DNA of 63,931 nucleotides, counting the filler, from Octopus bimaculoides (lineage: Eukaryota), in NCBI RefSeq assembly GCF_001194135.2. It is 3 parts of 3 records of this genome, joined end to end, with 100 filler letters (N's around TTAATTAATTAA, not from the genome) between each part and the next. Parts side by side here need not be neighbours in the genome. Positions count along the whole stretch, not along the records: positions 1 to 29,819 come from NC_068985.1; 2 more parts are not named here. One strand, written 5' to 3'. Positions 1 to 29,819 of this stretch are shown piece by piece. The translations under genes were made by a program, and so were the position numbers. The notes under the pieces were generated by a model. The model was not told the DNA's origin. It saw only the letters and a program-made list of their open reading frames with translations, and ran no database searches. Numbering within the stretch: the first letter of the stretch is position 1; every line of letters starts with the position of its first letter.

Positions 1-535
1 GAATGAAAATAACGACCTGTAGATTGGAAATCATCATCTTCATCATAGTTTTAACATCCACATTTTATTAGGTTTCATGAGTCTGGCAGAATTCATCCAT
101 ATAGATATTTGTTAAAGTTTAAGGACTTAATGTGTTTCCTTGGTCTTTAGACACCTATGGAAAGACAATTGGAGCTAAACAACAATAACTGTAATAGTAA
201 CAACAATAACCACAAAAGTCAAAGTCAATGCTGCTGCTGCTATTGGTGCTGCTGCTGCTGCTGAAGCTACCGGTGGTGCTGGTGCCACTGCCACTGCTAA
301 CCAACCATTATTTCAAAAAAGATAGATCCCAGTAATTCACCTTGAAAAACAAAACAATGATAAATCTAAAAACAACTGTTAAGGGCTCTGGTTTGAGATA
401 AAACAGAGATAACAAGCCTGTGATCAGGATGCTTGTCTGTTTCAGCTCACATTAACAGAGGATCTACTAACTTATTTCCAACAGCTACACAAACTCAATA
501 TGCTGCCTCGTATAAAATAAATAATAAGAACTAAC

Positions 536-569
536 CATGCTATCTCCACAATGTTTTTCTGCTTGAAAT
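536..569 (-). CDS. 34-nt exon type A, unit 1: (K)FQAEKHCGDSM, phase 2->0
   Basis: Minus strand ctttcttttgcag|ATTTCAAGCA...GATAGCATG|gttagt; homologous to 7497-7530 and 18246-18279. Confidence 0.8.
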
Positions 570-3500: not shown

Positions 3501-6500
3501 AAAGATGAAAGACGAAATTGACAAATCTGGGATTTAAAATCAGGCAATAATCCTCCACTTCATTAAAAGAAGTTGCAAAATATTCATCACATCTTGAACA
3601 AGAGAGAAAAAACGTTAAGAGATTTGGATATACTGGATTTTACAGTATCCAGATATAGTATTTGTGTAAGAAAAGAAGACAAAATGGTATCACTTTCAAC
3701 AACATTGCTCATTCAGAAATGACCTGTGATTAAGCCTTCCTGATTGAATGCTCCCATATCCAGCCTGAATAATCTAACTGTTGTATATTCACACGAACCG
3801 TATATGACAATATCATTTTCAAAATAAATACTCTCATCATTGAAGTTTTAAAGCCACAGGATAATGCATGATTAATTCAAAACAATGTGAAAAAATAAGC
3901 ATCAATGTTATCTAAGGAAAAGACAAAGGCCAATACAGTTTCACAGTATGGCTGTGAGAAGGGAAAGGGCAGGCTGAGATATCACAAGGCATCCAATCAG
4001 GTGTTTTAACAATCCTGGACTGCTACTGTTATTATCAAATTCCAAAAGGGAAAGGTAAATATAATTTCACTGGTATTTGAACTCAGAATGTAGACAAATA
4101 TCACAAAGCCTTCCACCTGATGCTCAAATCATTCTGTGAATATACTGCACTCTAAAAGAATCATATCAACTAACCTCACAGTCTTTGAAGTATCTCACTG
4201 CCAGCTTCCTGCAAAAAATATACAAACAAATTTTCATCACATCATCACAATCATCAGCTCACAAAAAACTGTTATTTTGTGTTTGTATATTTTAACATTT
4301 TAATCTAAATCTACAATTCATTTGAATAGGTCAAATCTTTAATTATCACCAGGTATCATGTTTGTTGATGTCTGTAGTGTATCAAACTGGAATATATTTG
4401 AATTATAAGTCTTTTGAAGACCTTCATCGATAATTAATCTTTAGAGAACGCTTAAGGTTTTTGCAGTTTTTTTCCTAAATGTATTTGAATGAGTTTTTAT
4501 GGACCTTTCTTACAATCCTTGCTCTTCCCAATGCAGCAGATTTCAGAATTGATGCAATTCTTGTAATTATACAAAACTCAATAAGGAAGCCTTTAAGTCT
4601 GTTGGTGACGACTGAGATTATTAATTGTTCTAAGTTAATATCTTTATTGTCCCTTAACATTGTGCCACCTTGCTTCTCCTTGCCTGGCTGACTGAGGTAG
4701 CCAAGTACCACCTCTATAATAAGACAACTATCTCTGCCTCTCTGTCATACACTAACCTCTTCCCAGGCTCACAGCCACATCCCTCCATTCCTCCCCTTCT
4801 CTCAACCAGGAGCCCTTTGTCTTGCAAGTCACTTGGCAACTCCACAGGTGCTGGTGCCACATGATGGTATCTGTGCAACTGCCATGTAGGAAGTTCCCAT
4901 GCTACTGCTACATAAAATGCGCTGAGTACACTCTGTAAAGTAGTTGGCATTAAGAAGGGCTTCCAGCAGCATTGACCATGCCAAAACATACAACTGGAGC
5001 CTGCTGGGGCCCTCCAGCTTACCATCTGTTTTCCATGCTAGCATAGGTTGGACTGTCTGACTGGAGGTGGCAAGGTGGAGAGCTGCAACAGGGGTCAGTC
5101 CCCTACTTTGGTAGGTTTCTATACCTGGATGCACTTCTTAATGCCAACCACTTTACAGAGTGCACTGGGTGCTTTTAAAGTGGCACCAGCAGAGATACAT
5201 CTTACATGGCACCAGGAATGGGGAATTTTAATTTTAATCAGAGTTTAAAACCTTTATTGTTCAATTCATTTCAATGTGAACTGGGGAAAGAAATGATCTT
5301 GAACTAAAAATTCCCCCCTTATTCTGTTCTGTGGGTGTATGGAATAGGCTTGAGCCTTTTGTCTTGCAGTTAAATACATACAAACAAAAATAGTGTATTA
5401 AAAGTTGCATAACCAGGACTTACTGAACTTGAAATAATGAACATATAGATTCCATGTTGTCTCATATCAACAATGTCATGGCTTCTCTTACTATTTCCTA
5501 CATTTATATTTCCTTATATCGTTATCATATTTATACAACACAATCTCCTCATAATTCAAAGTCAAAATCAAAGTTAAGCAGAATGTTATATATTCACTTA
5601 CTTGGCTTCCACAAGTCCAAAAGCTTCTAGATGAGCATCCACATCCAAGAGATAATATTTATACTTCTAAAAAAGTTTACAATAAAAGCATTTGTTGTGA
5701 CTTTATAATAAAAACACTGATTTGATATTAATAATTCTCTTTTGGACTGGTTTCGACTCTTCGATGAAACAAAACATTACCTGACTCACAGAAACACTTT
5801 TAAAAAAAGCTTATCCTTTTCTCTATACATTCTAACTTCCAGTAAAGAGCTGAAATCATTGACTGATGGGGGATATTACCTAACTTGAGAAGTGATGCAG
5901 TAAAGGGACGTAACATAATACTACATGGCACTTCATCTTGCATTGTCAACTGATTTTGATATACCTCTCTTAAAAAAAGATTCAATGCAGTCACTAAAAG
6001 ATAGCAGCAAATATCTCCCTTAAATCTTGCAAAAAACTAAAAGGTGTGGCTGTGTGTTAAGTCTATTATATGTAGCAAGTTTATATTTGAAAGGAGGAAT
6101 GGGTACTTCTCCTACCAACCACAAACTCTACCTCTGCCTATCACCTGATATGTTATGTGTTGTCTTATCAGACATGAAAAGATGAAAATCTATGTTGACT
6201 TCAGTATGATTTTGAATTCAAAAGGTCAACAATGGTGTTATGCTGTCATGTGATCTGCTCATCTATACCTTCATCAACTATCATTATCATCATCACTTAA
6301 CATCCGTTTTCCATGCTGGCATGCATTGGACAGTATGACAGGATCCGACCAGGCTCCATTTCTCCATTGAATTGCTAATTCAAACCAATTTACAGAGTGT
6401 AGTGGATGATCTTATGCAGCATCAGCATGGCTGTGTATACACGGCACCAGCACCCATAAGCCTCCAAGATTATGAATGCTCAGCTAGAGAAGGATACAGT

Positions 6501-9500
6501 GAGCATGCCTGTATGCAAGGACAACCCCACCTCTGCTTAGCTTGACATGTCTTGTCAAGCACAGCAAGCCACCAGGAGCCCTAGTCCCTGTCCTGTCATT
6601 CCCTCCGTGAGACCCAACATCTGAGGATCCTCTCTCACCACTTCATCCCACATCTTCCTGGGTCTACCCTTTCCGTTTTAAAAGTGTTTAACATAAGTTT
6701 TCCTGGAGGGGACGATTAGTTTCCATTTTAATTTGGTAAAGCTGTTTGTTGCTTGGCCTCAACATCTGAACGAAAAAACAAATGGATGGAGAGGAAACTG
6801 TTGATTAGGTCCAAATGCATGAAGGTGAGAGAATTGATGCTAAAGGCACCCAAGAAGCAGATGGTGGTGTTAAACTGGGTGGTATGTAAACCCTGTACCC
6901 AGTTTCCTGATAAAGCAAAGGAGTTTGATGAAAACCAAACAACTGGTCATCTTATGTCCATATGAATGAAAATAACGACCTGTAGATTGGAAATCATCAT
7001 CTTCATCATAGTTTTAACTTCCACATTTTATAGCTTTCGCGGGTTTGGCAGAATTTATTCATATAGATATTTGTTACAGTTTAAGGACTTAATGTGTTTC
7101 CTTGGTCTTTAGACACCTATGGAAAATCAATTGGAGATAAACAAAAATAAATGTAATAGTAAAAACAACACCCACAAAAATAACAATCAATGCTGCTGCT
7201 GCTAGTGGTGGTGGCACTACTACTGAAGCTGTTGGTGGTGCTGCTGCTGCTATCCCCACTATTCTAAAAAAGAAGACCCCAACAATTCACCTTCAAAACG
7301 AAAATGATGAAAAATCTAAAAACGACTGTTAAGGGCTCTGGTTTGAGATAAAATAGAGATGAGAGATAACAAGCCTGTGATCAGGATGCTTGTCTGTTTC
7401 AGCTCACATTAACAGAGGATCTACTAACTTATTTCCAACAGCTACACAAACTCAATATGCTGCCTCCTATAAAATAAATAAATAAGAAGAACTAACCTCA
7501 TTTTCAAAAAAATGTCTTTTTACTAGAAATCTGCAAAAGAAAGAAAGGAATACATATAATGACTATCATCATCAACATCATGATCATCATCATTTTTATG
7601 TCTCTAGACAAAGATAAACATCATAAGATGATAACTTTTTGTACAACTTCATCTTTAGACATGAATTCTCTTTTAATATTGGAACCTACATTTGGACTTC
7701 ATTTCAATTAGTTTCATTTCTGAACCACATTACAAGTTTTATTCTTGGCTTAATGCATGGTACCAGACCATTGATATTTAGTAAAGACAGAAATATTGGT
7801 TTCAAATTTTGGCACAAGGCCTGTAATGTCAATTGGTATTTATTTTATCAACCCTCAAAAGAAAGAAGATGACTTTGCTGAGATATAAACTCAGAATGTG
7901 AAGATGGACAAAATNNNNNNNNNNNNNNNNNNNNNNNNNNNNNNNNNNNNNNNNNNNNNNNNNNNNNNNNNNNNNNNNNNNNNNNNNNNNNNNNNNNNNN
8001 NNNNNNNNNNNNNNNNNNNNNNNNNNNNNNNNNNNNNNNNNNNNNNNNNNNNNNNNNNNNNNNNNNNNNNNNNNNNNNNNNNNNNNNNNNNNNNNNNNNN
8101 NNNNNNNNNNNNNNNNNNNNNNNNNNNNNNNNNNNNNNNNNNNNNNNNNNNNNNNNNNNNNNNNNNNNNNNNNNNNNNNNNNNNNNNNNNNNNNNNNNNN
8201 NNNNNNNNNNNNNNNNNNNNNNNNNNNNNNNNNNNNNNNNNNNNNNNNNNNNNNNNNNNNNNNNNNNNNNNNNNNNNNNNNNNNNNNNNNNNNNNNNNNN
8301 NNNNNNNNNNNNNNNNNNNNNNNNNNNNNNNNNNNNNNNNNNNNNNNNNNNNNNNNNNNNNNNNNNNNNNNNNNNNNNNNNNNNNNNNNNNNNNNNNNNN
8401 NNNNNNNNNNNNNNNNNNNNNNNNNNNNNNNNNNNNNNNNNNNNNNNNNNNNNNNNNNNNNNNNNNNNNNNNNNNNNNNNNNNNNNNNNNNNNNNNNNNN
8501 NNNNNNNNNNNNNNNNNNNNNNNNNNNNNNNNNNNNNNNNNNNNNNNNNNNNNNNNNNNNNNNNNNNNNNNNNNNNNNNNNNNNNNNNNNNNNNNNNNNN
8601 NNNNNNNNNNNNNNNNNNNNNNNNNNNNNNNNNNNNNNNNNNNNNNNNNNNNNNNNNNNNNNNNNNNNNNNNNNNNNNNNNNNNNNNNNNNNNNGAAACA
8701 AAGAAAAAACAAAACATGTTATTGTGAATCTGTGTAGTTTGGTAGAGTTTTAGAGTAATTAAGAATGAGGCCAGACTGGAGTTTATATTCTGGCGGTCCT
8801 TGTGGTCTAAATGGACACCATACAGATTCAAGAACGAAAGCTACATAACCTTCATAAAAGAGGATCACACCTTCAACAGGTCTGAGGTGTAGAATTCCAC
8901 TTGGGGCATTTGCTTGCTCATTTCCATATGCATAACAATTTGTCTCTTTGTTAAATATTATCAATTAAGCACCAAAGATAACCTTGCAGCATGTAGAGTC
9001 CATTGACTTTGGCTCTTGTTGTACATCACAAGAACGTATTCCCAAAGATGATCATGTCTCTGAAGACTGTTCCTTAGAATTCACTTTAGCCATATTCCTG
9101 ACAATAGCATCTGGCTACACTAGCAGTCTAGGCATGACTTTTTGTCAGAACATAAGGTATAGCAACTGAGAAGTGAAAACCATTTTAACTGACCAGCTGT
9201 GGCTACTTAACTCTTTGGCATTTAAAGCAGTTATATCCAGCCCGAATGTTCCATCTGATTTATGTTGAAGATAGCCAGATCTGACATTTCACACCTACCC
9301 TACAATCTCATTCTAAAAATAAACAAACATCTCATGAAATATGCAAAGCTACAAGATAAACCATGATCAATTCAAAATGNNNNNNNNNNTGCCATGCAGT
9401 AATTGAGGATATAATTTATATATTTTTTATGTTTGTTTTGGTCATCAGACTGCAACCATGCTGGGGCATTACCTTCAAGAATTTTGGTCAAAGGTATGAA

Positions 9501-12068
9501 CCCTTGAACATATAATTGAGTAAAGACAGAGAGAGATATGGAGGGTGGTAAGTGCCAGGGCATACCCATGAGGTTTGAAGGTCATAATATAAGTGGCAGG
9601 ATATTACCAAAGAAGCGTGATTAGAGAGTGGGGAGAAGTGAGAGGTGAAAGCTTGGGTGCATATACAGTGGGGAAGGGCTACCAGGTAGCAATGATACAG
9701 AGAAACAGGGCTGTGAGGACAAGATTGAGGAGAGAGAGGTAAACATAATGCCCAAAGGAGGATATATGAGGAAGAGATGTGAAGATGTAGATTGCTTTAT
9801 TGTGGTTGGGTGTGTGGAAAGGTTTATTGTTACATGTGAGTGGAGCACACAGGTCAGGGGCTAGTGGGTAGCAATGATACAGTGAGGAAGGAGGAAATGC
9901 AAAGAAGGGAAGAAGGTAGATTGACTTGTTAAAGTAGGGTGTGAGAAATGTTTTCTTGTTACACAGTGCTTCAAGATCTCAGTTTTGTAGACATGGGTAG
10001 GTCTTCTCAAGAACATCACATCACCAAACATTTCGGTCCATTGTTATTTCTTCTGTGAAGCCCAACATTCTCAGATCCATCCTTACCCCTTCATCCCATG
10101 TCTTCCTGGGTCTTCCTACTCTGCAGGTACCATCCGTTCAGTAACTAACACTTCCTTATGCAGCTGTCCTCATTCACACGCATCACATGCCCAGACCAAT
10201 TTAGTCTTCTCTCTTTTATGATACATTTCATTCTACTTATCCCCAACATTTCTCTCAATATATTTNNNNNNNNNNNNNNNNNNNNNNNNNNNNNNNNNNN
10301 NNNNNNNNNNNNNNNNNNNNNNNNNNNNNNNNNNNNNNNNNNNNNNNNNNNNNNNNNNNNNNNNNNNNNNNNNNNNNNNNNNNNNNNNNNNNNNNNNNNN
10401 NNNNNNNNNNNNNNNNNNNNNNNNNNNNNNTGTGCATGCACACTGATGTTGCACATCCACAAAAGCATAACACCTTCATTTCTCTCCAGTCTACGCATGT
10501 CTTTTGCATTCTGAGCTCGTGTCTCAATAACATGGAGTATAACCATTCACACACAAGCATCATACAACCTACCTTTCACTCTGAGAGAGAGACCTTTTAT
10601 TGTGAAAACAGGTAATAGCTCTCTCAACTTTCTCCATCCTATTCTTATTGTAGAATAGTTTCAAATCCTGGCACAAGGCCAGCAACTTCAGGAGAGGGCT
10701 AAGTCAATTACATTGCCCCCAACTGCTCAGATTTTACTTATTCTATCAAACGTGAAAGGATGAAAGTTAAAGTCAACCTCAACAGAATTTGAACTCAGAA
10801 TGTAGAGATGGACAAAATGCCACTAAGCAATATACCTGTTGTGCTAATGGTTCTGCCAGTTCACCAGATCATCATCTTTGTCGTTAAATGTCCACTTTAA
10901 TACTGCATAGGTTGGACCGTTTGACTGATGACTGGCAAACCAGGAGGTTGCACCAAGCTCCAATCTGGTCTGGAAAAGGTTTCTACACCTGGATGCCCTT
11001 TCTAATGCCACCCACTCCAAGAGTGTAGCAGGTACTTTTTATGTGCCACCGGCATGGGGGGCCAATCAAGCAGTACTGGCACTGACCACACAGAAATGGT
11101 GCTTTTCATGTGCCACCGGCACGAGAGCCAGTCAGGCAGCACTGACAAGGTACATGCTCGAACGGTGCTTTTTATGTGCCAGCGACTTGTGACCAGTCAT
11201 GGGGCACTGGCATTAACCATGCTCGAATGGCGTTCTTAATGTGGCATGGGTGCAAGTCAAGTAGTACTGGCATCAGCCACAACAATGATTTCACTTGACT
11301 CAGCAGGTCTTTTCAAGTACATTTTATTGCCCAATGATTGAAGGTTACTCTTAAATGGGCCAGTTACAGAAAACTGACATAGGCCACGGCTATGGTCTCA
11401 CTAGGCTCGCTGAGCCTTCTCAAGCACAGCATATCTCCAAAGGTCTTGGTCAGTTGTCAGTGCCTCTGTGAGGCCCAACATTCAAAGGTCGTGCTTCACC
11501 ACTTCATCCCAGGCCTTGCTGGGTCTTCTTTCTCCGAATGTTCCCTCCACTGTTACGGTGTGACACTTATTCACACAGCTATCCTCATCCATATGCTACA
11601 AATGACCATACCAGCACAGTTGTCTCTCTTGCCCACCACATCTGATGCTTTTTATGTCCAACTTTTCACTCAGGGTGTTTACACTATGCTATGTATGCAC
11701 ACTAATCTTACACATCCAGCAGAGCATACTAGCTTCATTTCTTGTAAGCTTACGCATGTCCTCAACAGTCACAGCCTATATTGTGACCAAAGTTATACAA
11801 CACAATCTCCTCATTTCAATTAAGTAAAAATCCAATTTAAACAAAATGTGATAAAAATATTTACTTAGCTCTGTCTTTGTCAATATCTCTATTGTCCAGT
11901 TCAATGCAAAAATCTCCGTAATCCTATAAATATTCAAAATGAAAACATATGTTTAGACTTTTATGATAAAATTAATGATTTAACATTGGAGCCTGGTGTA
12001 GCCATCTGGTTCGCCAGTCCTCAGTCAAATTGTACAACCCATGCTAGCATGGAAAGTGGACGTTAAAC

Positions 12069-12121
<53 letters not shown>

Positions 12122-15100
12122 GTTCTATTTTACCATGTAACTGACGTTGAGTGTGCCAACTCTGAGGGTGTGGGAGGTGTGGGCCTGTGAGACCCTGGGA
12201 TGAGGGACAGCAGTGTCATGTACCTGAAAAGAAAGCCTGCATTTGGCAGAACTCATAGACAAACAATAGCCTACAACCTGCATACACTACACCATCTTTA
12301 TTGCAAAATAAACTTTTTAAATGCATATCAATGCTTGTGCCTGCTTTGTGGGTGTGAAAGTGGATGGCTGTATTTTAAATGGATGTGGGCATGGTTGGGT
12401 GGGTAAGACATTCAATTTGAAACCACATGATTCTTGATTCAATCCCAATGCACAGCACCTTGGGCAAGTGTTTTCTACCACAGNNNNNNNNNNTGTAGAA
12501 GACCAGCTGTTGCATCTACATTGAAGCCTCCCTCTGTCTACAGCACAATGTTATCTAAGGAAAAGACAAAGGCCAATACAGTTTCACAGTATGGCTGTGA
12601 GAAGGGAAAGGGCAGGATGAGATATCACAAGGCATCCAATCAAGTGTTTTAGCAATCCTGGACTGCTATTATTATTATTACCAAATTCAAAAAGGGAAAG
12701 GTACAATTAACTGCATTGATATTTGAACTCAGAATGTAGACAACCAAGACAAATATCGCTAAGCCTTCCACCCGATGCTCTAATCACTCTGTCAACAACA
12801 TACTGGATTGTAAATAAATCATATCAACTAACCTCAAAGTCTTTGAAGTATTTTTCTGCAAATTTTCTGCAAAAGAAAGAAACAAATTTACATCACAATC
12901 ATCATCATTATTTCTACATCAGCTCACAAAAAGAACCATTATAGAACTGTTATTTTGTGTTTGTAAATTTATTATTTCAATCTAAATCAACAATACATTT
13001 GAATAGGTTCAATTCCTGATTATCACTAAGCATTATATTTGTGGATGTCTGCATCGTATCAAACAGGAATGTATTTGAAATATCAGGTTGAGTAAAAAGT
13101 AATCAATGTTTTGAAACATGAAGGATTTGTACCAAATTTTTGCAGAGAATAAAATTTTCTTTTCACATTTTTTTTTTTGCAATTGTCTCTTTAATACAGA
13201 CATAGACTTGTCAAATGCATCAATAAATTAACATTGATATCTTTTTCACCGTTGTTATAACCATCTGAAATGGAACTGTCGAAGTGTGATATTCAAGCAA
13301 TTTTGTTATTGTTATAAACCCAAACTGGAATATCAAAATTTAAAAGGTTTTAATTGACTAAAAATACAGCAATCTACAATAGAAACAAAGATTGCTAAAT
13401 TGTAAGCAAAACCAAACTTCAACGCAATAACAGTTTTATGAAGCGAGTTGCTACAGTCTCGACTAACTAAAATCTAACACTGAACACGTCCTGCCGCAAA
13501 CAGAACAGAACTCCACACAGTTGCACTGCAAGCAAATAACAGCAATCGAGACAATCAAAGTCATGTGATCAAGACTAAAATCACAACAGTTATTCAACTT
13601 CTAAAAAGGATGTAAGGCACCTGAAACTGCTCGTGATATCAATGAAACATTTGGTGAGGAAATGACCAGTGAGTGGTCAGTTTGAAAATAGTTTAAATGA
13701 TTTCGCAGTGGAGACCTGACCGTTGAAGATTGTAAGCGTAATGGATGCCCATCTGTCATTGATGACAGTCAATTAAAGACTGTCATTGAGAAAGATCCAC
13801 GTAAGCCCACTCGAAAATTGGCAAAAGTACTTCGAGTTAGCAGAAAACTACCTGCAACAATTTGCATGCAATTGGAAAATCCAAAAAAGCTCAATAGATG
13901 GGTACCAAATGATTTGAATGAAAATCAGAAAATGCGCAGATATGAAATTTGCTCATCGCTTCTCCATTACCAGTCTGATCCATTTCTTGACCGTAGTGTA
14001 ACTTGCGATGAAAAGGGGGTTCTGTACAATAACAAAAAATGATCTTCACAGTAGTTGGTCCAAAATGAAGTCCTGAAAACTTTGGCTACACCTGAGCTCT
14101 TCAAAAAGATGGTTGTGGTGACTGTTTAATGGTGTACTGCTGGACTCATCCACTAGAACTTCTTAAAACCTGGAAAAACCATTAGTGCAGAAACATATTG
14201 CCATGAAATTGCCAAAGTGAATGGAAAGCTGCTATTCCTCTGTCCCAGACTGGTCATCAGAAGAAGGACAATTATTCTTCATGACAATGCTCAACCACAT
14301 GTTTCACTAATGATTCTCCAGAAGCTGAGGCAGCTTGGATATGAAGTTCTTCCCCACCCAGCTTATTCCCCAGACCTTTATCCTATCAACTACCACTTTT
14401 TCAAGCACCTTGATGGTTTCCTGCGAGAGAAAGCGTTCAAAAATCAAACCAATACCGAAAGAGCATTCAAAGAGTTCATAAGATCCGGAACTCCAGATTT
14501 TTATGTTACTGGAATAAACAAAGTTGTAACTTGTTGGCAAAAATGTGTTGATTGGTATTTGATGAATAAAATTTCCGTGCTGTTGAAATATATTGCGATA
14601 AATTTCATGTTTCAAAACATTGCTTACTTTTTACTCAGTCTAATATAATCTTTTGAAGATCTTCAGTGATTATTAATCTTTAGAGAATGCTGAAGGTTTT
14701 GCCAGTTTTTTTTCTAAATGTATTTGAATGAGATTTTATGGACATTTATAGGTAAATAGTATTATTCTTTCTACTTATTTTTATTATCATTCACAGTGTG
14801 CTGAATGTTTTACATTCAGAATCAGCATTCATGATAACTGGTCACAACCAGTTTCCTTAGATATCAAGGACCTTTCTTACAATCCTTGCTCTTCCCAATA
14901 CAGAAGATTTCAGAATTGATGCAATTCTTGTAATTATACAAAACTCAATAAGGGAGCCTTTAAGTCTGTTGGTGACGACTGAGATTATTAATTGTTCTAA
15001 GTTAATATCTTTATTGTCCCTTAACATTGTGCCACCTTGCTTCTCCTTGCCTGGCTGACTGAGGTAGCCAAGTACCCTCTCTATAATAAGACAACTATCT

Positions 15101-18100
15101 CTGCCTCTCTGTCATACACTAACCTCTTCGCAGTCTCACAGCCATATCCCTCAATTCCTCCCCTTCTCTTAACTAAGAGCCCTTTGTCTTGCAAGTCATT
15201 TGGCAACGCCACAGGTGCTGGTGCCACATGAGAGCACCTGTGCAACTGCCATGTAGGAAGTTCCCATGCTACTGCCACATAAAATGCGCTGAGTACACTC
15301 TGTAAAGTAGTTGGCATTAGGAAGGGCTTGCAGCAGCAGAGACCATGCCAAAACATACAACTGGAGCCTGCTGGGGCCCTCCAGCTTGCCAGTTCCTGCC
15401 AAAATATCCAATCCATGCCATTAAATGATGATGGTGATACATGATGATCATGATGAAGATGATGATGGTAATGATGATGCTGATTACCATAAAACAAACA
15501 CTTTTGAAAAATTTCTAAAGGTCTTTACTTGTAGGTAAAAAAAGTTTTACTTTTTATAATTGAATCAGGGCAAAATGAAGACAGACCAGGCTGAGATGAC
15601 AATCATGTTAACTGACAGATCTTGCAGATCTAAATAGGATTATTATATGTAATGGTATATATCTTTACATGACTTTGTAGCACAGAAGATTTAAAAGATA
15701 TAATTTCTTATACATTATTCGTTATTTGTATCAAATTTAAGATCTGTTTTCAATTTCAGTTTCATAAAAATGACACATTTTCATCATAAAGCAATCAAGA
15801 TTGGCAGATGATTTTATCCAAAGTTTGATGTCATCATCATCAACATTGTTATCATCATTGAACATCTGTTTTTATGCAAGCATAGGTTGGACAGTTTGAC
15901 TGGAACTGAAAGGTAGAGAGCTGCAACAGGCACCAGTCCTCTGCTTTAGCAAAGTTTCTACAGCTGGATGCACTTCCAACCACTTTACAGAGGGCATTGG
16001 GTACTTTTAAAGTGGCACTTTTAAAGATACATCTTACATGGCACCAGGAAATGGGGAATTTTAATTTTAATCAGAGTTTAAAACCTTTATTGTTCAATTC
16101 ATTTCAAATGTGAACTGGGGAAAGAAATGATCTTGAACTAAAAATTCTCCCCTGTCTCTGTTCTGTGGGTGTATGGAATAGGCTTGAGCCTTTTGTCTTG
16201 CAATTAAATACATACAAACAAAAATAGTGTATTAAAAGTTGCATAACCAGGACTTACTGAAGTTGAAATACTGAACATATAGATTCCATGTTGTCTCATA
16301 TCAACAATGTCATGGCTTCTCTTACTGTTTCCTACATTTATATTTCCTTATATCGTTATCATATTTATACAACACAATCTCCTCATAATTAAATATAAAA
16401 TCAAAGTTAAGCNNNNNNNNNNNNNNNNNNNNNNNNNNNNNNNNNNNNNNNNNNNNNNNNNNNNNNNNNNNNNNNNNNNNNNNNNNNNNNNNNNNNNNNN
16501 NNNNNNNNNNNNNNNNNNNNNNNNNNNNNNNNNNNNNNNNNNNNNNNNNNNNNNNNNNNNNNNNNNNNNNNNNNNNNNNNNNNNNNNNNNNNNNNNNNNN
16601 NNNNNNNNNNNNNNNNNNNNNNNNNNNNNNNNNNNNNNNNNNNNNNNNNNNNNNNNNNNNNNNNNNNNNNNNNNNNNNNNNNNNNNNNNNNNNNNNNNNN
16701 NNNNNNNNNNNNNNNNNNNNNNNNNNNNNNNNNNNNNNNNNNNNNNNNNNNNNNNNNNNNNNNNNNNNNNNNNNNNNNNNNNNNNNNNNNNNNNNNNNNN
16801 NNNNNNNNNNNNNNNNNNNNNNNNNNNNNNNNNNNNNNNNNNNNNNNNNNNNNNNNNNNNNNNNNNNNNNNNNNNNNNNNNNNNNNNNNNNNNNNNNNNN
16901 NNNNNNNNNNNNNNNNNNNNNNNNNNNNNNNNNNNNNNNNNNNNNNNNNNNNNNNNNNNNNNNNNNNNNNNNNNNNNNNNNNNNNNNNNNNNNNNNNNNN
17001 NNNNNNNNNNNNNNNNNNNNNNNNNNNNNNNNNNNNNNNNNNNNNNNNNNNNNNNNNNNNNNNNNNNNNNNNNNNNNNNNNNNNNNNNNNNNGGCTGTGT
17101 GTTAAGTCTATTATATGTAGCAAGTTTATATTTGAAAGGAGGAATGGGTACTTCTCCTACCAACCACAAACGCTACCTCTGCCTATCTCCTGAATTGTTG
17201 TATGTTGTGTTATCAGACATGAAAAGATGAAAATCTATGTTGACCTCAGCACAATTCTGAATTCAGAAATTCAAGAAAGATGTTATGTTATGCTCAGCTA
17301 AATCTTCATCATCATCATTTAAAGGATTGGATAGTCTGATAGGAGCCGACCAAGCTCCATTTCTCAGTGTTTGCAGGGTTTCTACAGCTGGATGCCCTTC
17401 CTAAAGCCAACCAATTTACAGAGTGCACTGGATGCTTTTATGCAGCACCAAAATGGGTGTGTATATGTGGCATTGGACTGGGTGGATTTTGTATGGCACC
17501 AGCACCCATGAGTCTCCAAGATTACAAATGCTGAGCTAGAGAAGGATGCAGTAGGCATTCCTGTATACAAGGACAACCACACCTCTACTTAGCTTGATGT
17601 CTCTTGTCAAGCACCGCAAACCACCAGGAACCCCGGACCCTGTCATTCCCTCCATGAGACCCAACTTCTGAAGATCCTCTCTCACCACTTCATCCCGCAT
17701 CCTGCTGGGTCTACCCCTTCCACTTTAAAAGTGTTTTAAATAACTTTTTCTGGAGGGGTGAGTTAGTTTCCATTTTCATTTGGTAAAGCTGTTTGCTGTT
17801 TGACCTCAACATCTGAAGAAAAAAACAAATGGATGGAGAGGAAACTGTTGATTTGGTCCAAAAGCAAGAAGGTTAGAGAATTAATGCTAAAGGCACCCAA
17901 GAAGCAAATGGTGGTGCTAAACAGGGTAGCACTGAAAACCAGTAGCCAGATTTCTGCTACTGGTGGTGGTGATGCTTCTGTACACATTCTTATTTTAAAA
18001 AAGGAAGACTCCCCTTCCTCCATACACAAAATGATTCACCTTTGAAAACAAAAAATTCTAAATCTAAAAACGACTGTTAAGGGCTCTGGTTTGATGAAAT

Positions 18101-18994
18101 AAAACAGACAAGAGATAACAAGTCTGTGGTTAGGATGCTTGTCTGTTTCAACTCACATTAACAGAGGATCTACTAACTTATTTCCAACAGCTACACAAAC
18201 GCAACATGTTGCCTCATATAAAATAAATAAATAATAAGAACTAACCTTGCTCTCTCCAATATAGTCTTTTGCTAGATTTCTGCAAAAGAAATAAAGGGAC
18301 ACATATCATTATCACTATCATCATCAACATCATCATCATCATTTTTATGTCTCTATAAATAAACAATTATCTCATGAAATTCTCAAAGCTACAAGATAAA
18401 CCATGATCAATTCAAAATGATGTGAATAAAGAAGCTTTACATTTCCCAGAGTAATCTGATTGCTAAACGGTTAATCATTGTATATTTTTTTAGTATCATC
18501 ATATTTAATGATGCATATTTTTAAGTCCATGTAGAGTGTATTATTTTCAAAATACAACTCATAAGGATCAGTTTGCCACTCCTTCTCGTTCATCAAGTCT
18601 GCCATGCAGTAATTGAGGATATAATTTATATATTTTTTATGTTTGTTTTGGTCATCAGACTGCAACCATGCTGGGGCATTACCTTCAAGAATTTTGGTCA
18701 AAGGTATGAACCCTTGAACATATAATTGAGTAAAGACAGAGAGAGATATGGAGGGTGGTAAGTGCCAGGGCATACCCATGAGGTTTGAAGGTCATAATAT
18801 AAGTGGCAGGATATTACCAAAGAAGCGTGATTAGAGAGTGGGGAGAAGTGAGAGGTGAAAGCTTGGGTGCATACAGAGACGTGTGGACTACCAGATAGAC
18901 AAAGCCAACCTCAACAGAATTCAAAATGTAAATATGGACGAAATGCCACTATGCATTGTGCCTGTTGTGCTAACAATCCTGTTACCTCACCATC

Positions 18995-19032
<38 letters not shown>

Positions 19033-22000
19033 NNNNNNNNNNNNNNNNNNNNNNNNNNNNNNNNNNNNNNNNNNNNNGCGTGTGTGTGTGTGTGTGTGTG
19101 TGTGTATGCATATATATATATATATATATATCAGTATATTGTGATCACATTTATACAGCACAATCTCCTCATTTTAATAAAGTAAAAATCCAATTTAAAT
19201 AAAACGTAATAGAAATATTTACTGAGCTCTTCTTTTGTCGACATCTCCTCTACTTATGTCTTTCAAAAGGTTACTGTAACCCTATAAATATTCAAAATGA
19301 AAGCATATGTTTAGACTTTATAATAAAATTAATGATTTAACATCAGTAGTTCTATTTTACCATGTAATTGACTCTTCAATCAAAATGGATATTGCCTGAC
19401 TTCCTGAAGCAATTGGTTGTTTTGCTTCTCTACATCCACAGGAAGATCAACTTTCAGATGTTTGATTCAAAAACAGACAGAAACATTGGAATAATTCCAG
19501 AACATATTCTTTCAACCAACTTTGTACTGTAGGAAAGTAATAATTTCTAAACAAAGCACAAAATCACACATTTTGTAGGAGTCTAGTTATTTGCCCACAG
19601 AACTCAACTAATAAAGGAATGTGGTTTACTACTTAGGGTTATAACTTCACAATTATAAAGTAATGGCTTTGGTTCCTGGACCAAGAGGTACATTATGCCC
19701 CTGAGTAAAACAGTTCAGTATATTTCCCTCCAGTCTACTTAGCTGACAATAAGCAACAAATGAGTGGTGCAGGAGCACTCTCTCAATCCAGCTATCATGT
19801 CCTCACTGTTGGGTGAAAGGTAGGATGGTTGAGAAGTTATTTGTATTGAATTCTCATTGAATAGAAACATAAAACACTTAGTGAACGTACAGTTTCATGC
19901 TACCAGGTCATATTATTTTGTGTGAGATAGCTATGGGGTTATTTTTATGGGTTATTTTTCTAAATACTTGACTGATAATTTTTTTCTGAAATCAGAAAAG
20001 ATGAAAGACGAAATTGACAAATCTGGGATTCAAAATCAGGCAATAATCCTCCACTTCATTAAAAGAAGTTGCAAAATATTCATCACATCTTGAACAAGAG
20101 AGAAAAAAACGTTAAGAGATTTGGATATACTGGATTTTACAGTATCCAGATATAGTATTTGTGTAAGAAAAGAAGACAAAATGGTATCACTTTCAACAAC
20201 ATTGCTCATTCAGAAATGACCTGTGATTAAGCCTTCCTGATTGAATGCTCCCATATCCAGCTCAAATATTCTACCTGTTCTATATTTACATGCATCTAAC
20301 TTCTCATACCTACCCTACAATGTCATCCTAAAAGTAAATAATATGATCATTGAAGTCTTAAAGCTACAAGATAATGCATGATTAATTCAAAACTGTGAAT
20401 AAATAAGCATTACCTTTGACAGAGGAATCTGAATTGTTTAAAGGATTAAACAAGAATAACAAAAATAGGAAAATTAAATAGAAGTCCAATACAAGAAACA
20501 AAGGCTTTCTCCTTCATCAGTTTCAATATCAAAGCTGCTGTGTCTACCAACACAACTTCAATAACTTTACTTGTGTTATCAAGCTTCAATAAATGGGATG
20601 CTACACTGAACTCACTGGCATTTCAATTCAGAAATTGTAAACATTGAACTAGTAAATCGAAATCTTGTATACTATGAAGTCTGTTCCCCTTAATGCTTCA
20701 CCAAATTACCAATATTCAAAAAACATGTAAAATTCCAAAACAAAGCAGAGAAGCAAAATAAGTTTGGAGAAGGGAATATATTTCATCTCTAGTCCCTAAC
20801 AGAACAAGGCCCTCACAGAAGGCAGCATATAATCATTTCATTTGCTCCATCATAGCAACTAAATCCTCGTCGACTGCCATCTTTGAAATGGCATCCACTT
20901 GCACTACGTTCTTAAGTTTCAGACATCGATCCAAAAAAAAGACAATACTTTTATGTATTTTTATAAGTCTGTCAGATGAAGCAAGTTAGTTTCTGTTGTG
21001 CGAGAGTATGATACCCTCTGGCGAGAAAGGACTGGACCATTACATATAAATAGTAGCCGTCTGAGTAAGTGAGTATTTCATGCTTGTTCCACAGTTTGTG
21101 TGTTGTTAGTTCAAAGTTTACAGTTTGAGTTAGCATCTTGGATTGTTGGTTCTTAAAACAATGATGTTACATTTGTGTGGTTACATTCTATTTGTTTCGA
21201 TTATATTGTTATTACACTGTTGCAGTGCATGTTTTTTTATCCACAAGGGTATAACATCTGTTGACAAGGATTGTTCGAAACTCACAATGGTTATTTGACA
21301 ATTTCTGCATTATGGCAAACCTATTAGCCACAGTAGTATAGTTTCAAGAGAAGCAACAGGAACAACCACAGGAATTGCAAAAACAAATACTACAACATCA
21401 ACAATTAACTGAGTTACAGTCAGCGAAGTCCAGTAATTTCAAAGCACCTGAAGATAGAGAAATTCAGGCAAAGATTATCTCGATAATGGAGCAAGTGAAT
21501 CAGGATTTATCTCAACAGACCATCACAGAAGAATATCAGACTCTGGTAAATCTTGAACTTGATGTGAAAAAATTACAACATAAAGACTCTGCAAAAATTC
21601 AAATGTATCGTCCCAGGTGGCAAAATCAAAAACAAAGTGTCAGGGCCCAATCCATGTTATGGTTGTGGGGAGGGGGGCCTACACTACAAAAAGGATTGTC
21701 TGTTTAAAAACAAAAAAGTGCTATAGTTGTCAGAAGCTGGGACACATGAGTCATTGTGGAACTATGAGTCTCAAACACAGAAAGTTCCAAGGTGTTTTCA
21801 GTGGAGAGTGATTGTGATGGGAAAACAAAAAAATTTATGCACATAAAAATAAATGATATGGATACCAAATTACAGTTAGACATAGGTAGTAACATCACGA
21901 TTATAAAAGCGGATACTTGGAAAATATTGACAAACTGAGATTATGTAAAACAGCAAGAATAGCAGGTGGTTTAACAGGCGATAAATTACATTTCATGAGC

Positions 22001-25000: not shown

Positions 25001-26616
25001 ATTATTATTATTACCTAATTCAAAAAGGGAAAGGTACAATTAACTGCATTGATATTTGAACTCAGAATGTAGACAACCAAGACAAATACCGCAAAGCCTT
25101 CAAACCAATGCTCTAATCACTCTGCCAACGTACTGAACTGTAAATAAATTGTATCAACAAACCTTATGTCCTTCAAAGTATGTCTTTGCTAGTTTTCTGC
25201 AAAAAAAAAAACAAACATATTTTCATCACATCATCACAATCACCATCATTACTTCTACATTAGCTTACAAAAAGAACCATTACAGAATTATTATTTTGTG
25301 TTTGTACATTTTAATATTTTAATCTAAATCTACAATTCATTTGAATAGGTCTAATCTTTAATTATCACCAGGTATCATATTTGTGGATGCCTGTAAAGCA
25401 TCAAACTGGAATGTATTTGAATTATAAGTCTTTTGAAGACCTTCATCCATCAATAATCTTTAGAGAATGTTGAAGGTTTTTATTATCATTGCTGGTGCAC
25501 ATGAATGTTTTACATTCATAATCAGTGTTCTTGATAATTGGTCACAACCACTTTACTCAGATGTCAAGAACCTTTCTTACAATCCTTGCTCTTCCCAATA
25601 CAGCAGATTTCAGAATTGATGCAATTCTTGTAATTATACAAAACTCAATAAGGGAGCCTTTAAGTCTGTTGGTGACGACTGAGATTATTAATTGTTCTAA
25701 GTTAATATCTTCATTGTCCCTTAACATTGTGCCACCTTGCTTCTCCTTGCCTGGCTGACTGAGGTAGCCAAGTACCCCCTCTATAATAAGACAACTATCT
25801 CTGCCTCTCTGTCATACACTAACCTCTTGCCAGGCTCACAGCCACATCCCTCCATTCCTCCCCTTCTCTCAACTAAGAGCCCTTTGTCTTGCAAGTCATT
25901 TGGCAACTCCACTGGTGCTGGTGCCACGTGACAGCACCTGTGCCACTGCCATGTAGGAAGTTCCCATGCTACTGCCACATAAAATGCGCTGAGTACACTC
26001 TGTAAAGTAGTTGGCATTAAGAAGGGCTCCCAGCAGCAGAGACCATGCCAAAACATACAACTGGAGCCTGCTGGGGCCCTCCAGCTTGCCAGTTCCTGCC
26101 AAAATATCCAATCCATGCCATTAAATGATGATGGTGATACATGATGATCATGATGAAGATGATGATGGTAATGATGATGCTGATTACCATAAAACAAACA
26201 CTTTTGTAGGTAAAAAAAAAGTTTTACTTTTTAAATTGAATCAGGGCAAAATGAAGACAGACCAGGCTCAGATGACAATCAAGTTAACTGACAGATCTTG
26301 CAGATCTAAACAGGATTATNNNNNNNNNNNNNNNNNNNNNNNNNNNNNNNNNNNNNNNNNNNNNNNNNNNNNNNNNNNNNNNNNNNNNNNNNNNNNNNNN
26401 NNNNNNNNNNNNNNNNNNNACAATGTCATGGCTTCTCTTACTATTTCCTACATTTATATTTCCTTATATTGTTATCATATTTATACATCACAATCTCCTC
26501 ATAATTCAAAGTCAAAATCAAACTTAAGTAGAATGTTATATATTCACTTACTTTGCCTCCGCCTGTCCAAAATTTTGCTGATAAGCATCCACTTCCCATT
26601 CAAACTTTTTATATTC
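536..26616 (-). CDS. Partial multi-exon gene encoding a tandem 31-33-aa repeat protein of unknown family; start and stop lie outside the window or contig
   Basis: Eleven exons with AG/GT ends and compatible phases splice into an open frame: EYKKFEWEVDAYQQNFGQAEAK-KLAKTYFEGHK-GYSNLLKDISRGDVDKRRAQ-NLAKDYIGESK-[exon in N gap]-KFAEKYFKDFE-DYGDFCIELDNRDIDKDRAK-FLVKRHFFENE-KYKYYLLDVDAHLEAFGLVEAK-KLAVRYFKDCE-GYKSLWNNLCNRKSIDREGAK-FQAEKHCGDSM. Joining into a single transcript is inferred. Confidence 0.8.
1640..1850 (+). mobile_element. Degenerate non-LTR (RTE-like) reverse transcriptase N-terminal fragment
   Basis: EVIKALKCGKADEVDEMLRKIKREGILWL, then frameshift to IAWTSGRTPKQWQSGVMIPILKKGEK, typical LINE RT domain 0/1 motifs. 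Confidence 0.75.
1960..2230 (-). mobile_element. RTE LINE 3' end with C-terminal Cys/His motif and (CTG/CTA)n tail
   Basis: FKCSRCICDCHCRVGLYSQHGRC followed by ...GACGGATGCC-(TGC/TAC)n on the minus strand. Confidence 0.65.
2372..2645 (-). mobile_element. Non-autonomous (GAT)n-tailed RTE-related/SINE-like repeat
   Basis: ...CCAACCCATGCTAGCATGGAAAGCGGACGTTAAACGATGATGATG tail; related copies at about 6290-6680, 10880-11330, 11987-12120, 17310-17720, 22045-22280 and 28410-28860. Confidence 0.8.
2725..2786 (-). CDS. 62-nt exon type B, unit 1: GYKSLWNNLCNRKSIDREGA(K), phase 0->2
   Basis: atatttatag|GGTTACAAA...GGAGCTAA|gtaagt; one codon longer than its two paralogs, frame kept. Confidence 0.8.
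4175..4208 (-). CDS. 34-nt exon type A', unit 1: (K)KLAVRYFKDCE
   Basis: ttttttgcag|GAAGCTGGCA...GACTGTGAG|gttagt. Confidence 0.8.
5602..5666 (-). CDS. 65-nt exon type B', unit 1: KYKYYLLDVDAHLEAFGLVEA(K)
   Basis: aaacttttttag|AAGTATAAA...GAAGCCAA|gtaagt. Confidence 0.8.
7497..7530 (-). CDS. 34-nt exon type A, unit 2: (K)FLVKRHFFENE
   Basis: ctttcttttgcag|ATTTCTAGTA...GAAAATGAG|gttagt. Confidence 0.8.
10050..10620 (-). mobile_element. RTE LINE RT C-terminal fragment, interrupted by a gap
   Basis: DMRRLERNE..MLLWMCNISVH...LREMLGI...IKERRLNWSGHVMR, matching the RTE RRL.W.GHV.R motif. Confidence 0.75.
11865..11923 (-). CDS. 59-nt exon type B, unit 2: DYGDFCIELDNRDIDKDRA(K)
   Basis: atatttatag|GATTACGGA...AGAGCTAA|gtaaat. 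Confidence 0.8.
11987..12120 (+). mobile_element. 5'-truncated (GAT)n-tailed insertion specific to unit 2
   Basis: Interrupts tttaacat|agttctattttacc; the site is empty in paralogs at about 2845 and 19340. Confidence 0.85.
12833..12866 (-). CDS. 34-nt exon type A', unit 2: KFAEKYFKDFE
   Basis: ctttcttttgcag|AAAATTTGCA...GACTTTGAG|gttagt. Confidence 0.8.
13083..14643 (+). mobile_element. Mariner (Tc1/mariner, DD34D, Hsmar1/cecropia-like) with disrupted transposase
   Basis: About 40-bp TIRs (tcaggttgagtaaaaagtaa.. / ..ttactttttactcagtctaa), TA TSD at 13081-82 and 14644-45; motifs WVPNDL, TCDEK, HDNAQPH, HPAYSPDL; empty site in units 1 and 3. Confidence 0.95.
13310..13588 (-). mobile_element. 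Solo LTR nested in the mariner transposase
   Basis: 279 bp, minus-strand ends TGTTGTG...TATAACA, 5-bp TSD GTTAT at 13305-13309 and 13589-13593. Confidence 0.8.
18246..18279 (-). CDS. 34-nt exon type A, unit 3: (Q)NLAKDYIGESK
   Basis: ttcttttgcag|AAATCTAGCA...GAGAGCAAG|gttagt. Confidence 0.8.
19223..19281 (-). CDS. 59-nt exon type B, unit 3: GYSNLLKDISRGDVDKRRA(Q)
   Basis: atatttatag|GGTTACAGT...AGAGCTCA|gtaaat. Confidence 0.8.
20994..23659 (+). mobile_element. Internally deleted Ty3/Gypsy LTR retrotransposon
   Basis: LTRs 20994-21256 and 23406-23659 (TG...CA), PPT agaagaggaga, near-TSD gtttc/gtctc, gag knuckle CYSCQKLGHMSHC, protease LQLDIGS, integrase HPGMAKMK..IYWP and PWSRLHTD..YYLIIVDS; no RT/RNase H seen. 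Confidence 0.9.
25163..25196 (-). CDS. 34-nt exon type A', unit 3: (K)KLAKTYFEGHK
   Basis: ttttttttgcag|AAAACTAGCA...GGACATAAG|gtttgt; donor weaker than the paralogs but still GT. Confidence 0.75.
26552..26616 (-). CDS. 65-nt exon type B', unit 3: EYKKFEWEVDAYQQNFGQAEA(K)
   Basis: aaacttttctag|GAATATAAA...GAGGCAAA|gtaagt. Confidence 0.8.
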
Positions 26617-27870: not shown

Positions 27871-29171
27871 TATTTTGGACTGGTTTGGACTCTTCAATGA
27901 AACAAAACATTACCTGACTCACAGAAACACTTTAAAAAAACAAAACTAATCCTTTTCTCTATACATTCTAACTTTTAGTAAAGAGCTAAAATAATTGACT
28001 GATGGAGGATATGGCCTAACTTGAGAAGTGATGCAGTAAAGGGACGTAACACAATACTACAAGGCATTTAATTTTGCACTGTCAACTGATTTTGATATTC
28101 CCTTCTAAAAAGAAAATTCTATGCAGTCACTAAAAGATAGCAGCAAATATCTCCCTTAAATCTAGCAAAAAACTAAAAGGTGTGGCTGTGTGGTAAGTCT
28201 GTTAGTTTATATTTGAAAGGAGGAATGGGTACTTCTCCTACCAACCACAAACTCTACCGCTGCCTATCAGCTAAATTGTTGTATGTTGTGTTATCAGACA
28301 TGAAAAGATGAAAAGCTAATGTTGACCTCAGCATGATTTTGGATTCAGAAATTCAAGAAAGGTGTTATGCTGTCATTTGATCAGCTCAGCTACATCTTCA
28401 TCAACTATCATCATCATCATCAGCATCATTCAACGTCTGTTTTCCATGCTGGCATGGGTTGGACCGTCTGACAGTAGCTGTCTAAGTTCAGTCTCAGTTT
28501 TTGCATGGTTTCTACAGCTGGATGTCATTCCTAACACCAACCACTTTACAGAGTGTACTGGATGCTTTTACACAGCATCAGCATGGGTGTGTATACGTGA
28601 CACTAGAGTTGGTGGATTTTGTATGGCACCAACACGCATGAGTCTCCAAGATTATGAATGCTCAGCTAGGAAAGGATGCTGTGAGTATGCCAGTATGTAA
28701 GGACAACTACACCTCTGCATAGCTTGACATATCTTGTCAAGCACAGCAAACCACCAGGAGTCCCAGACCCTGTCCTGTCATCCCCTCTGTGAGACCCAAC
28801 TTCTGAAGATCTTCTCTCACCACTTCATCTCACATCCTCCTGGGTCTACTCCTTCCACTTTAAAGTGTTTTAAATAAGTTTTTCAGTAGGGACAGCTTAG
28901 TTTCCATTTTAATTTGGTAAAGCTGTTTGTTGCTTGACCTCAACATCTGAAGGAAAAAACAAATGGATGGAGAGGAAACTGTTGATTTGGTCCAAATGCA
29001 TGAAGGTGAGAGAATTGATGCTAAAGGCACCCAAGAAGCAGATGGTGGTGTTAAACTGGGAGGCATGTAAACCCTGTACCCAGCTTCTTAATAAAGCAAA
29101 GGAGTTTGATGAAAACCAAACAGCTGGTCATCTTATGTCCATATAAATGAAAATAACGATCTGTAGATTGG

Positions 29172-29205
<34 letters not shown>

Positions 29206-29637
29206 AGTTTTAATATTCACATTTTATAGCTTTCATGGGTTTGGCAGAATTCATTCATGTAGGTATTTTTTATAGTGTCAGGATTTAACGTGTTTCCTTG
29301 GTCTTTAGATTCCCAGGGAAAGACAATTGGAGCGAAACAACAATAACCATAACTAACAACAACAGCCACAAAAATCACAGTCAATGCTGCTGCTGCTACT
29401 GGTGCTACCCCCACTATTTTAGGTAAGGAAGAACTCCAGTAATTCACTTTCAAAATCAACAAATACTAAATCTAAAAACGACCGTTAAAAGGCTTTGGCT
29501 TTTTGTCATAAAACAGATGAAGGATAACAAGTCTGTGGTTAGGATGCTTGTCTGTTTCAACTCACATTAACAGAGGGTCGACTAACTTATTTCCAACAGC
29601 TACACAAACTCAATATGCTGCCATGTATAAAATAAAT

Positions 29638-29800: not shown

Positions 29801-29819
29801 ATGTATGTATATATATATA

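Follow-up and report, generated by a model that had tools for sequence, protein, structure and literature searches.

The window, a 63,931-nucleotide (nt) stretch of AT-rich, gapped eukaryotic DNA from Octopus bimaculoides (NCBI RefSeq assembly GCF_001194135.2), carries sequence of the gene LOC106881215 on its minus strand. Self-comparison revealed three tandem units of 7-10 kb, the non-coding parts of which are 80-97% identical. Each unit possesses four minus-strand mini-exons, termed B' (65 nt), A' (34 nt), B (59-62 nt) and A (34 nt), all of which have canonical ag/gt borders and open frames (Table 1). The B-type exons run from phase 0 to phase 2 and the A-type exons from phase 2 to phase 0, the latter giving the third codon base. 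A B+A pair comprises 93-99 nt, or 31-33 codons, and encodes one two-helix repeat of 31-33 amino acids (aa). Two such repeats, B'A' and BA, make up one genomic unit, in which kilobase introns separate the mini-exons. Spliced serially in the order of transcription (B'3, A'3, B3, A3, B'2, A'2, B2, A2, B'1, A'1, B1, A1, with B'2 in a gap), the exons join in frame without a stop, and the reading frame is independent of the gap lengths because it is set by the exon phases.

The homologous intron 3' of B'2 (16304-16411) matches 26420-26528 at 92.7% and enters the assembly gap at 16413-17092 at a point 24 nt short of the expected exon, and B'2 is therefore hidden in this gap; the O. sinensis protein has a B'A' repeat (residues 844-876) directly upstream of the B2A2 orthologue. 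Ten N runs interrupt the first 29.8 kb (from NC_068985.1), none of which is crossed by any compared exon or intron. The gap at 26320-26419 shortens the intron comparison adjoining B'3 (at 26420), and the remaining gaps are intronic. Judged by the O. sinensis protein, no coding exon is hidden between B2, A2, B'1, A'1, B1 and A1. An extra A exon near 9206-9239 was considered and rejected: the match to unit 3 is lost at 9312 and picked up again at 7606, and A2 is therefore the A exon of unit 2.

The spliced window peptide matches the O. bimaculoides model XP_014787006.1 (LOC106881215, 129 aa) at 96%. This model joins A'2-B2-A2-B'1-A'1-B1-A1 in series; the peptide also matches A0A0L8FTR5, which omits B1+A1. 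A further annotation, LOC128247888 (O. bimaculoides, 250 aa), corresponds to the C-terminal part of the same gene, and the three models (129, 139 and 250 aa, respectively) are fragments of one gene, which is interrupted by gaps in both versions of the assembly. A profile of the six window repeats (MAFFT alignment) was searched against 1.84e9 representative proteins; the single large relative to emerge was O. sinensis LOC115212235 (1935 aa, 21 repeat hits, E 1.5e-82), with a gene range of 310 kb and an O. vulgaris counterpart of 2076 aa. By this homologue, the O. bimaculoides gene would encode about 2000 aa over about 300 kb. The other profile hits (P0004-P0010) are all partial and were treated as chance; the two inspected, P0004 and P0005, are leucine-rich-repeat proteins that match the 'GAKxLAE' stretch only. 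No occurrence of the repeat outside Octopus was credited among the 1.84e9 proteins.

The encoded protein consists of four UBA-like domains, followed by the repeats, a C-terminal domain and an Ala/Glu/Lys-rich tail. In O. sinensis, the N-terminal UBA-like domains exceed the Pfam threshold (UBA_4, UBA_8), and about 33 repeats, alternating between 33 and 31-32 aa, extend over residues roughly 370 to 1422, about 30 regular ones being segmented. Downstream of them lies a non-repeat domain and then the low-complexity tail, which makes up the last roughly 290 residues (1641-1935). Reading of the N-terminus of the O. sinensis homologue (MGFNKALVVKRFSIDNW...) by eye, with no predictor run, showed no signal-peptide-like hydrophobic leader. 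The roughly 2000-aa protein is probably intracellular, and a secreted or venom-like product is not supported by this N-terminus, which carries UBA-like domains.

The B+A pairs are multiples of 3 nt and could be skipped in frame, as B1+A1 are in A0A0L8FTR5, features that would suit mutually exclusive cassettes of which each transcript carries one version. Such a Dscam-like arrangement is extremely improbable, however. In contrast to Dscam-type arrays, the annotated proteins of three species (gene models, not cDNA) carry the exon copies in series, and the order of the 33 O. sinensis repeats agrees with the genomic order in the window. Moreover, single exons of 65 or 34 nt are not frame-neutral, and the copies lie 7-10 kb apart, interleaved with exons of other classes.

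The exon copies were compared by gapped alignment of each exon with its 200-nt flanks, as ungapped 40-nt flanks proved misleading owing to T-run indels. Same-class exon copies differ at 24-44% of bases, whereas their flanking introns differ at 0.5-17%. Pooled over pairs with colinear flanks, mismatches amount to 116/328 (35%) in exons and 208/2196 (9.5%) in introns. Exon divergence exceeds intron divergence in all four exon classes, significantly so in seven of the eight pairs (Fisher one-sided p 7e-4 to 3.5e-10); only A'1/A'2 was not significant (exon 8/34, intron 53/353). B'1 and B'3 differ at 21/65 positions, with 12 non-synonymous and 2 synonymous differences among 21 codons, whereas the 3' intron beside them differs at 4/132. 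The corresponding values are 13/34 against 14/169 and 32/185 in the two introns for A'1/A'3, and 23/59 against 13/197 in the 5' intron for B1/B3. A1/A2 is the extreme pair, with 13/34 in the exon, 1/200 in the 5' intron and 9/189 in the 3' intron. The counts that the preliminary description had given for the B' exons, their codons, the adjacent intron (131-132 nt aligned) and the A' exons were thus reproduced, and its argument that a contrast recurring in independent exon classes is not due to chance is borne out. In sliding windows, divergence is highest over the exons, tails off through a shoulder of about 100-150 nt in the 3' intron, and falls to 0-3% mismatches in distal intron stretches, some of which have none over 160 nt. 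A divergent patch in the A1/A2 intron (window 201-350), considered as a hidden exon, turned out to be an unstable (GCA/GTG)n tract.

Comparison with O. sinensis revealed the age of the exons. B2A2, B'1A'1 and B1A1 are colinear with O. sinensis residues 877-907, 908-940 and 941-972, with 25/30, 24/32 and 20/31 identical residues, compared to 12-16 for the next-best repeat. These values correspond to 65-83% identity between orthologues, versus 23-45% between paralogues. All three repeats also have colinear orthologues in O. vulgaris that are closer than any paralogue, and two further repeats, present only in A0A0L8FTR5, are colinear with O. sinensis 1067-1119. Taken singly, A1 and A2 each share 7/11 residues with their own orthologue and 2/11 with that of the other, yet their flanking introns in O. 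bimaculoides differ at just 0.5% and 4.8%. As the orthologues are colinear and one-to-one, the exon differences between units 1 and 2 predate the split of O. bimaculoides and O. sinensis; each of these repeats was already distinct before the two species separated, and has stayed so.

The introns present the opposite picture. The two species are 13-34 million years apart, with a mean autosomal synonymous divergence (dS) of 0.123 (PMC10925132). A neutral divergence of at least about 12% is therefore expected between units that were already distinct in the common ancestor. However, the inter-unit introns are 95-100% identical over hundreds of nt (0.5-5% mismatch). With a mismatch so far below this dS, the introns are much more recent than the exons beside them. 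An older exon age, which the preliminary description had named among the observations that would speak against its own proposal, is what we found, and the anomaly that remains is the youth of the introns.

Further analysis revealed that the relationships among the units change along the sequence. Around A', the odd one out is unit 2 in the 5' intron (20/33 informative sites), unit 3 in the exon and unit 1 in the 3' intron (20/34), a double switch within 500 bp (chi-square p=2e-5), and the identity between units shifts blockwise from about 80% to 100%. L001, the 3' end of the same gene in the chromosome-level record, has one exon with its flanks colinear with the window at 67-72% identity, and its other shared sequence consists of dispersed repeats. 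The low identity of the flanks in this distant unit indicates that the homogenisation is local. Altogether, we propose, as the probable explanation, that gene conversion among the units makes their introns uniform and that selection preserves the differences among the exons, such that old exons sit within recently copied introns. The introns of neighbouring units would be repeatedly overwritten by non-allelic gene conversion or unequal exchange, i.e., by concerted evolution. A conversion tract entering an exon would swap the residues of one repeat for those of another, and such tracts would either abort where the sequences mismatch or be purged by purifying selection that keeps the repeats individual. 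Differences at synonymous sites would persist along with the many non-synonymous ones found within the same 34-65 nt. The expected outcome would be exon-sized islands of divergence with short intron shoulders, surrounded by near-identical intron.

The units might be real and the identity of their introns created or exaggerated by short-read collapse or by gap filling from sister units. Several of the ten N runs lie exactly at the ends of homologous tracts (e.g., 26320-26419 and 16413-17092), identity reaches 100% over more than 150 nt in parts of the introns, and the chromosome-level record has similar gaps. We nevertheless regard an assembly artefact as unlikely. The identity is graded (80-100%) and mosaic rather than block-identical, with indels and private substitutions in every unit, and divergence climbs smoothly toward the exons. 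Copying between units would also need true copies that were nearly identical beforehand, and three topologies within 500 bp are unexpected from consensus gap filling. Purifying selection on ancient introns, kept near-constant as splicing signals for 34-nt exons or as RNA-editing duplexes, is very improbable. Mini-exons of 34 nt do need strong definition, and splice-proximal motifs and a (GAU)n tract upstream of the A exons occur in every unit; however, the distal parts of the introns are the most conserved and the 100-150 nt beside the exons the least, the conserved tracts include copies of dispersed repeats and microsatellites, and the same positions in the distant unit of the gene are only 67-72% identical.

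The preliminary description had attributed the contrast to exon-specific hypervariability, an account that the exons themselves do not sustain. The copies are consecutive repeats of one protein, and the differences among B2A2, B'1A'1 and B1A1 predate the species split. Differences between exon copies are distributed evenly over the three codon positions (56/55/51). The ratio of non-synonymous (dN) to synonymous divergence, dN/dS, is 0.7-1.3 in the exons (NG86, Nei-Gojobori). At codons with a conserved amino acid, synonymous differences number 7/24 between units 1 and 3, 1/15 between units 1 and 2, and 2/13 between units 2 and 3, with 3/12 at fourfold sites; between units 1 and 3 the synonymous divergence exceeds the intron level of 9% (p=0.006 and 0.013). 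Divergence at synonymous sites is not what selection on amino acids would lead one to expect, which weakens the hypervariability account, and the combination indicative of diversifying selection, dN clearly above dS with an exon dS close to intron divergence, was not found.

A recent duplication of whole units, followed by exon-focused acceleration through diversifying selection or targeted mutation as proposed for conotoxin and snake-venom phospholipase A2 (PLA2) genes, would account for an exon divergence 3-15 times that of the introns, with boundaries at the splice sites. It would also suit the pace of the repeats, which have changed faster than the remainder of the protein: O. sinensis and O. 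vulgaris show 28/1070 differences in the repeat region and 2/570 in the N-terminal and middle domains. For O. bimaculoides versus O. sinensis, the 65-83% identity of orthologous repeats set against the dS of 0.123 suggests a dN/dS near 1, and no clear orthologue is found for unit 3. This sequence of events is quite unlikely all the same, given that units 1 and 2 have colinear orthologues in another species, which makes their exon differences older than a recent duplication could be. Divergence is as high at synonymous as at non-synonymous positions, recombination would account for both the intron shoulder and the switches in topology, and the N-terminus, as read without a predictor, has no signal-peptide-like leader. 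With orthologues just 65-83% identical, the repeats are not slow-evolving, and the faces outside the scaffold may be under relaxed constraint or some positive selection. This would concern the whole repeat region between species and would not explain why exons and introns contrast within the array.

Several points weigh against conversion with protected exons. Unit 3 has no clear one-to-one orthologue and is about 50% identical to several repeats, and its exons could be younger or reshuffled. The intron comparisons are confined to O. bimaculoides; O. sinensis and O. vulgaris were compared as proteins. The synonymous counts are small, coming from 12 fourfold sites and 13-24 conserved codons per pair. 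The window is a gapped short-read assembly, in which gap closure within a tandem array can inflate intron identity, and some of the 100% stretches may have been inflated in this way. Finally, we infer conversion as the homogenising process, and selection or heteroduplex rejection as what guards the exons, from the patterns described above.

The repeats share a conserved scaffold over about 35 copies, with low-entropy positions Y2, F/L5, E8, L9, I/F16, A21, L24, A25, Y/H28 and F/C29. AlphaFold2 prediction from a seven-row alignment of three-repeat blocks gave two helices per repeat, with a predicted local distance difference test (pLDDT) score of 80.8; an earlier three-row run gave the same two-helix pattern at a pLDDT of 72.1. 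The invariant positions are spaced 3-4 residues apart, a periodicity which, rather than a burial calculation, places the scaffold on one face of each predicted helix. A Foldseek search against PDB found no significant match (best E 2.3, template-modelling score 0.44), and no Pfam repeat family was found at E up to 10 for the window peptide or up to 1 for the O. sinensis protein. The Pfam and PDB sequence hits of the spliced window peptide were dismissed as chance; the TRAP1 hit spans the artificial junction over the missing B'2. Like the TPR, Sel1 and HEAT-like solenoids, the octopus protein has two-helix repeats (31-33 aa here) with conserved small or hydrophobic residues at i, i+3/4 and i+7; however, compared to TPR and Sel1, it matches neither a curated repeat profile nor a solved fold. 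The conserved scaffold with variable faces reported in the preliminary description is therefore correct, yet it is expected of any helical repeat protein, and a rapid exon-specific diversification of exposed faces is not supported.

Among the closest known systems are the primate long- and middle-wavelength (LW/MW, red/green) opsins, in which conversion homogenises the introns, selection separates the exons, and a 'peak of divergence' results (Teshima & Innan 2008, reviewed in PMC3924837). Both systems consist of tandem paralogous sequences with introns more alike than exons and a sharp divergence peak on a coding segment. They both have exons nearer to their orthologues than to their paralogues (here B2A2, B'1A'1 and B1A1), introns whose divergence is too low for the age of the paralogues, and mosaic relationships along the sequence. 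They differ in that the octopus partners are many units within one gene instead of two genes, with exons of 34-65 nt and a much larger contrast (about 35% vs 0.5-10%). In the tandem KRTAP1 genes, the mode of evolution switches abruptly at the coding boundaries, with short-tract conversion and selection (bioRxiv 10.1101/282418). The octopus array resembles them in these respects, though the polarity is reversed, as in KRTAP1 the coding sequence is homogenised and the flanks diverge.

Venom genes such as those of conotoxins and snake PLA2 have mature-peptide exons that are less conserved than their introns; their products are secreted, with dN/dS above 1 and lineage-specific copies. The octopus exons likewise are more diverged than the adjoining introns in duplicated sequence, but the orthologues of units 1 and 2 are retained, dN/dS is about 1 and the synonymous sites have diverged.

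Some additional features were observed in the gene models and the homologous proteins. The C-terminus of XP_014787006.1, 'VSKDQGNTLSP*', derives from intronic sequence ('ag|GTGTCTAAAGACCAAGG...TAA') present in all units. The model, broken by the scaffold, probably gained a spurious terminal exon here, though the sequence may possibly be a recurrent cryptic terminal exon. Compared to O. sinensis (P0003), O. vulgaris (P0011) has a 129-aa insertion of four repeats (residues about 842-970) after O. sinensis residue 829, which comprises chimeric repeats, e.g., EYKDFLKEVNDYPKAFDSIKAKKLAEKYFKGRQ, as well as repeats 523-575 in a second, near-exact copy. Units may really have turned over between the sister species, or the insertion may be an error of assembly or annotation; from this indel, units have evidently also been duplicated and recombined, exons included. 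The O. sinensis motif DLILYKNGVLFDGGMFRYDWL ('LYKNGVLFDGG', residues 1565-1610), the exon of which is 29/30 identical in O. bimaculoides (L001 27131-27220), was considered as a possible SEP domain, an assignment that neither Pfam nor the PDB sequence search bore out and that was rejected.

The non-coding part of the window is rich in repeats. Many of the off-diagonal self-matches of the window belong to a dispersed repeat of about 170-200 nt, which occurs in both orientations, often begins with (ATC)n, and has copies that are 70-97% identical; it is probably a family of short interspersed nuclear elements (SINE) or miniature inverted-repeat transposable elements (MITE). A second dispersed element, at 29639-29819, starts exactly where homology to the other units ends, and has further copies at L001 10838-11006, 21753-21882, 26295-26478 and 36534-36673. 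The next upstream A exon, expected at about 29655-29688, is presumably displaced past the edge of the piece. Between A'3 and B3, unit 3 carries about 4.4 kb (20410-24872) that has no counterpart in unit 1 and contains an internal direct repeat (20994-21230 vs 23406-23635, 82%). Within it, 23722-23824 resembles the A-to-B' intron and matches 6757-6859; no open exon candidates were found in 20410-24872. The B1-A1 intron has a perfect 37-nt tandem repeat of 2.4 copies (2263-2350). In the pre-mRNA, an imperfect (GAU)n tract lies 30-70 nt upstream of the 3' splice site of every A and A' mini-exon and is conserved between units; it may help to define the 34-nt exons, or may be an inherited microsatellite. 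An Rfam search found no RNA family in the window.

Table 1. Positions of exons, intron tracts, the gap concealing B'2 and repeats in the O. bimaculoides array (positions count along the window)
Feature	Position	Strand	Length, phase and product	Remarks
Exon B'3	26552..26616	-	65 nt, phase 0->2; EYKKFEWEVDAYQQNFGQAEA(K)	canonical ag/gtaagt, open frame
Exon A'3	25163..25196	-	34 nt, phase 2->0; (K)KLAKTYFEGHK	
Exon B3	19223..19281	-	59 nt; GYSNLLKDISRGDVDKRRA(Q)	
Exon A3	18246..18279	-	34 nt; NLAKDYIGESK	
Exon A'2	12833..12866	-	34 nt; KFAEKYFKDFE	included in XP_014787006.1
Exon B2	11865..11923	-	59 nt; DYGDFCIELDNRDIDKDRA(K)	with A2, orthologous to O. sinensis 877-907 (25/30)
Exon A2	7497..7530	-	34 nt; FLVKRHFFENE	
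Exon B'1	5602..5666	-	65 nt; KYKYYLLDVDAHLEAFGLVEA(K)	with A'1, orthologous to O. sinensis 908-940 (24/32)
Exon A'1	4175..4208	-	34 nt; (K)KLAVRYFKDCE	
Exon B1	2725..2786	-	62 nt; GYKSLWNNLCNRKSIDREGA(K)	with A1, orthologous to O. sinensis 941-972 (20/31)
Exon A1	536..569	-	34 nt; FQAEKHCGDSM	
Assembly gap	16413..17092			conceals exon B'2 and about 380 nt of its 5' intron
Putatively homogenised intron tract 3' of B'1	5471..5601	-		matches 26421-26551, 4/132 mismatches
Putatively homogenised intron tract 5' of A1	570..888	-		matches 7531-7849, about 1% mismatches; 1/200 beside the exon
Putatively homogenised intron tract between B' and A'	4501..5024	-		95.4% to 14868-15391; about 1/40 mismatches in the alignment of units 1 and 3 (24872-26097)
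Putatively homogenised intron tract 5' of B1	2787..3282	-		matches 19282-19768, 0-5 mismatches per 40 nt; none in 3123-3282
Intronic source of 'VSKDQGNTLSP*'	120-154, 7082-7116, 29278-29309	-		
Dispersed repeat	2371-2546, 5019-5191, 10868-11055, 11985-12085, 15267-15478, 15831-16019, 17349-17450, 22045-22247, 25947-26120, 28393-28590		170-200 nt	many copies in L001
(GAU)n tracts	604-630, 7565-7591, 18317-18337; 4215-4245, 25205-25260			the last two upstream of A' exons

The phrase 'hypervariable exons in conserved introns' is open to misreading here, as it is the introns rather than the exons that stand out. Concerted evolution of introns with selection-protected exons is a known phenomenon, of which this array is a new and unusually sharp intragenic example: concerted evolution halts at the splice sites in an unusually clean manner, with 34-nt exons differing at 38% and introns at 0.5-5%. 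The protein itself is unstudied (a literature search on the locus name found nothing) and Octopus-only as far as the searches reach, with about 2000 aa, UBA-like domains and a repeat unmatched in Pfam or PDB. It is a rather doubtful further proposition that the mini-exons are fast-evolving interaction surfaces of an Octopus-restricted UBA-domain scaffold, with a between-species dN/dS near or above 1, repeat number and exon mosaics that vary between sister species, and conversion combined with selection for repeat individuality; in a stronger version, exon-targeted mutagenesis would be conceivable for unit 3 only. If the mini-exons were such surfaces, the gene would provide a natural system of islands, each the size of an exon, that withstand conversion at nucleotide resolution. 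With about 33 repeat units per gene and several sequenced octopus species, the array could serve to measure conversion tract lengths and the strength of the selection that protects exons.

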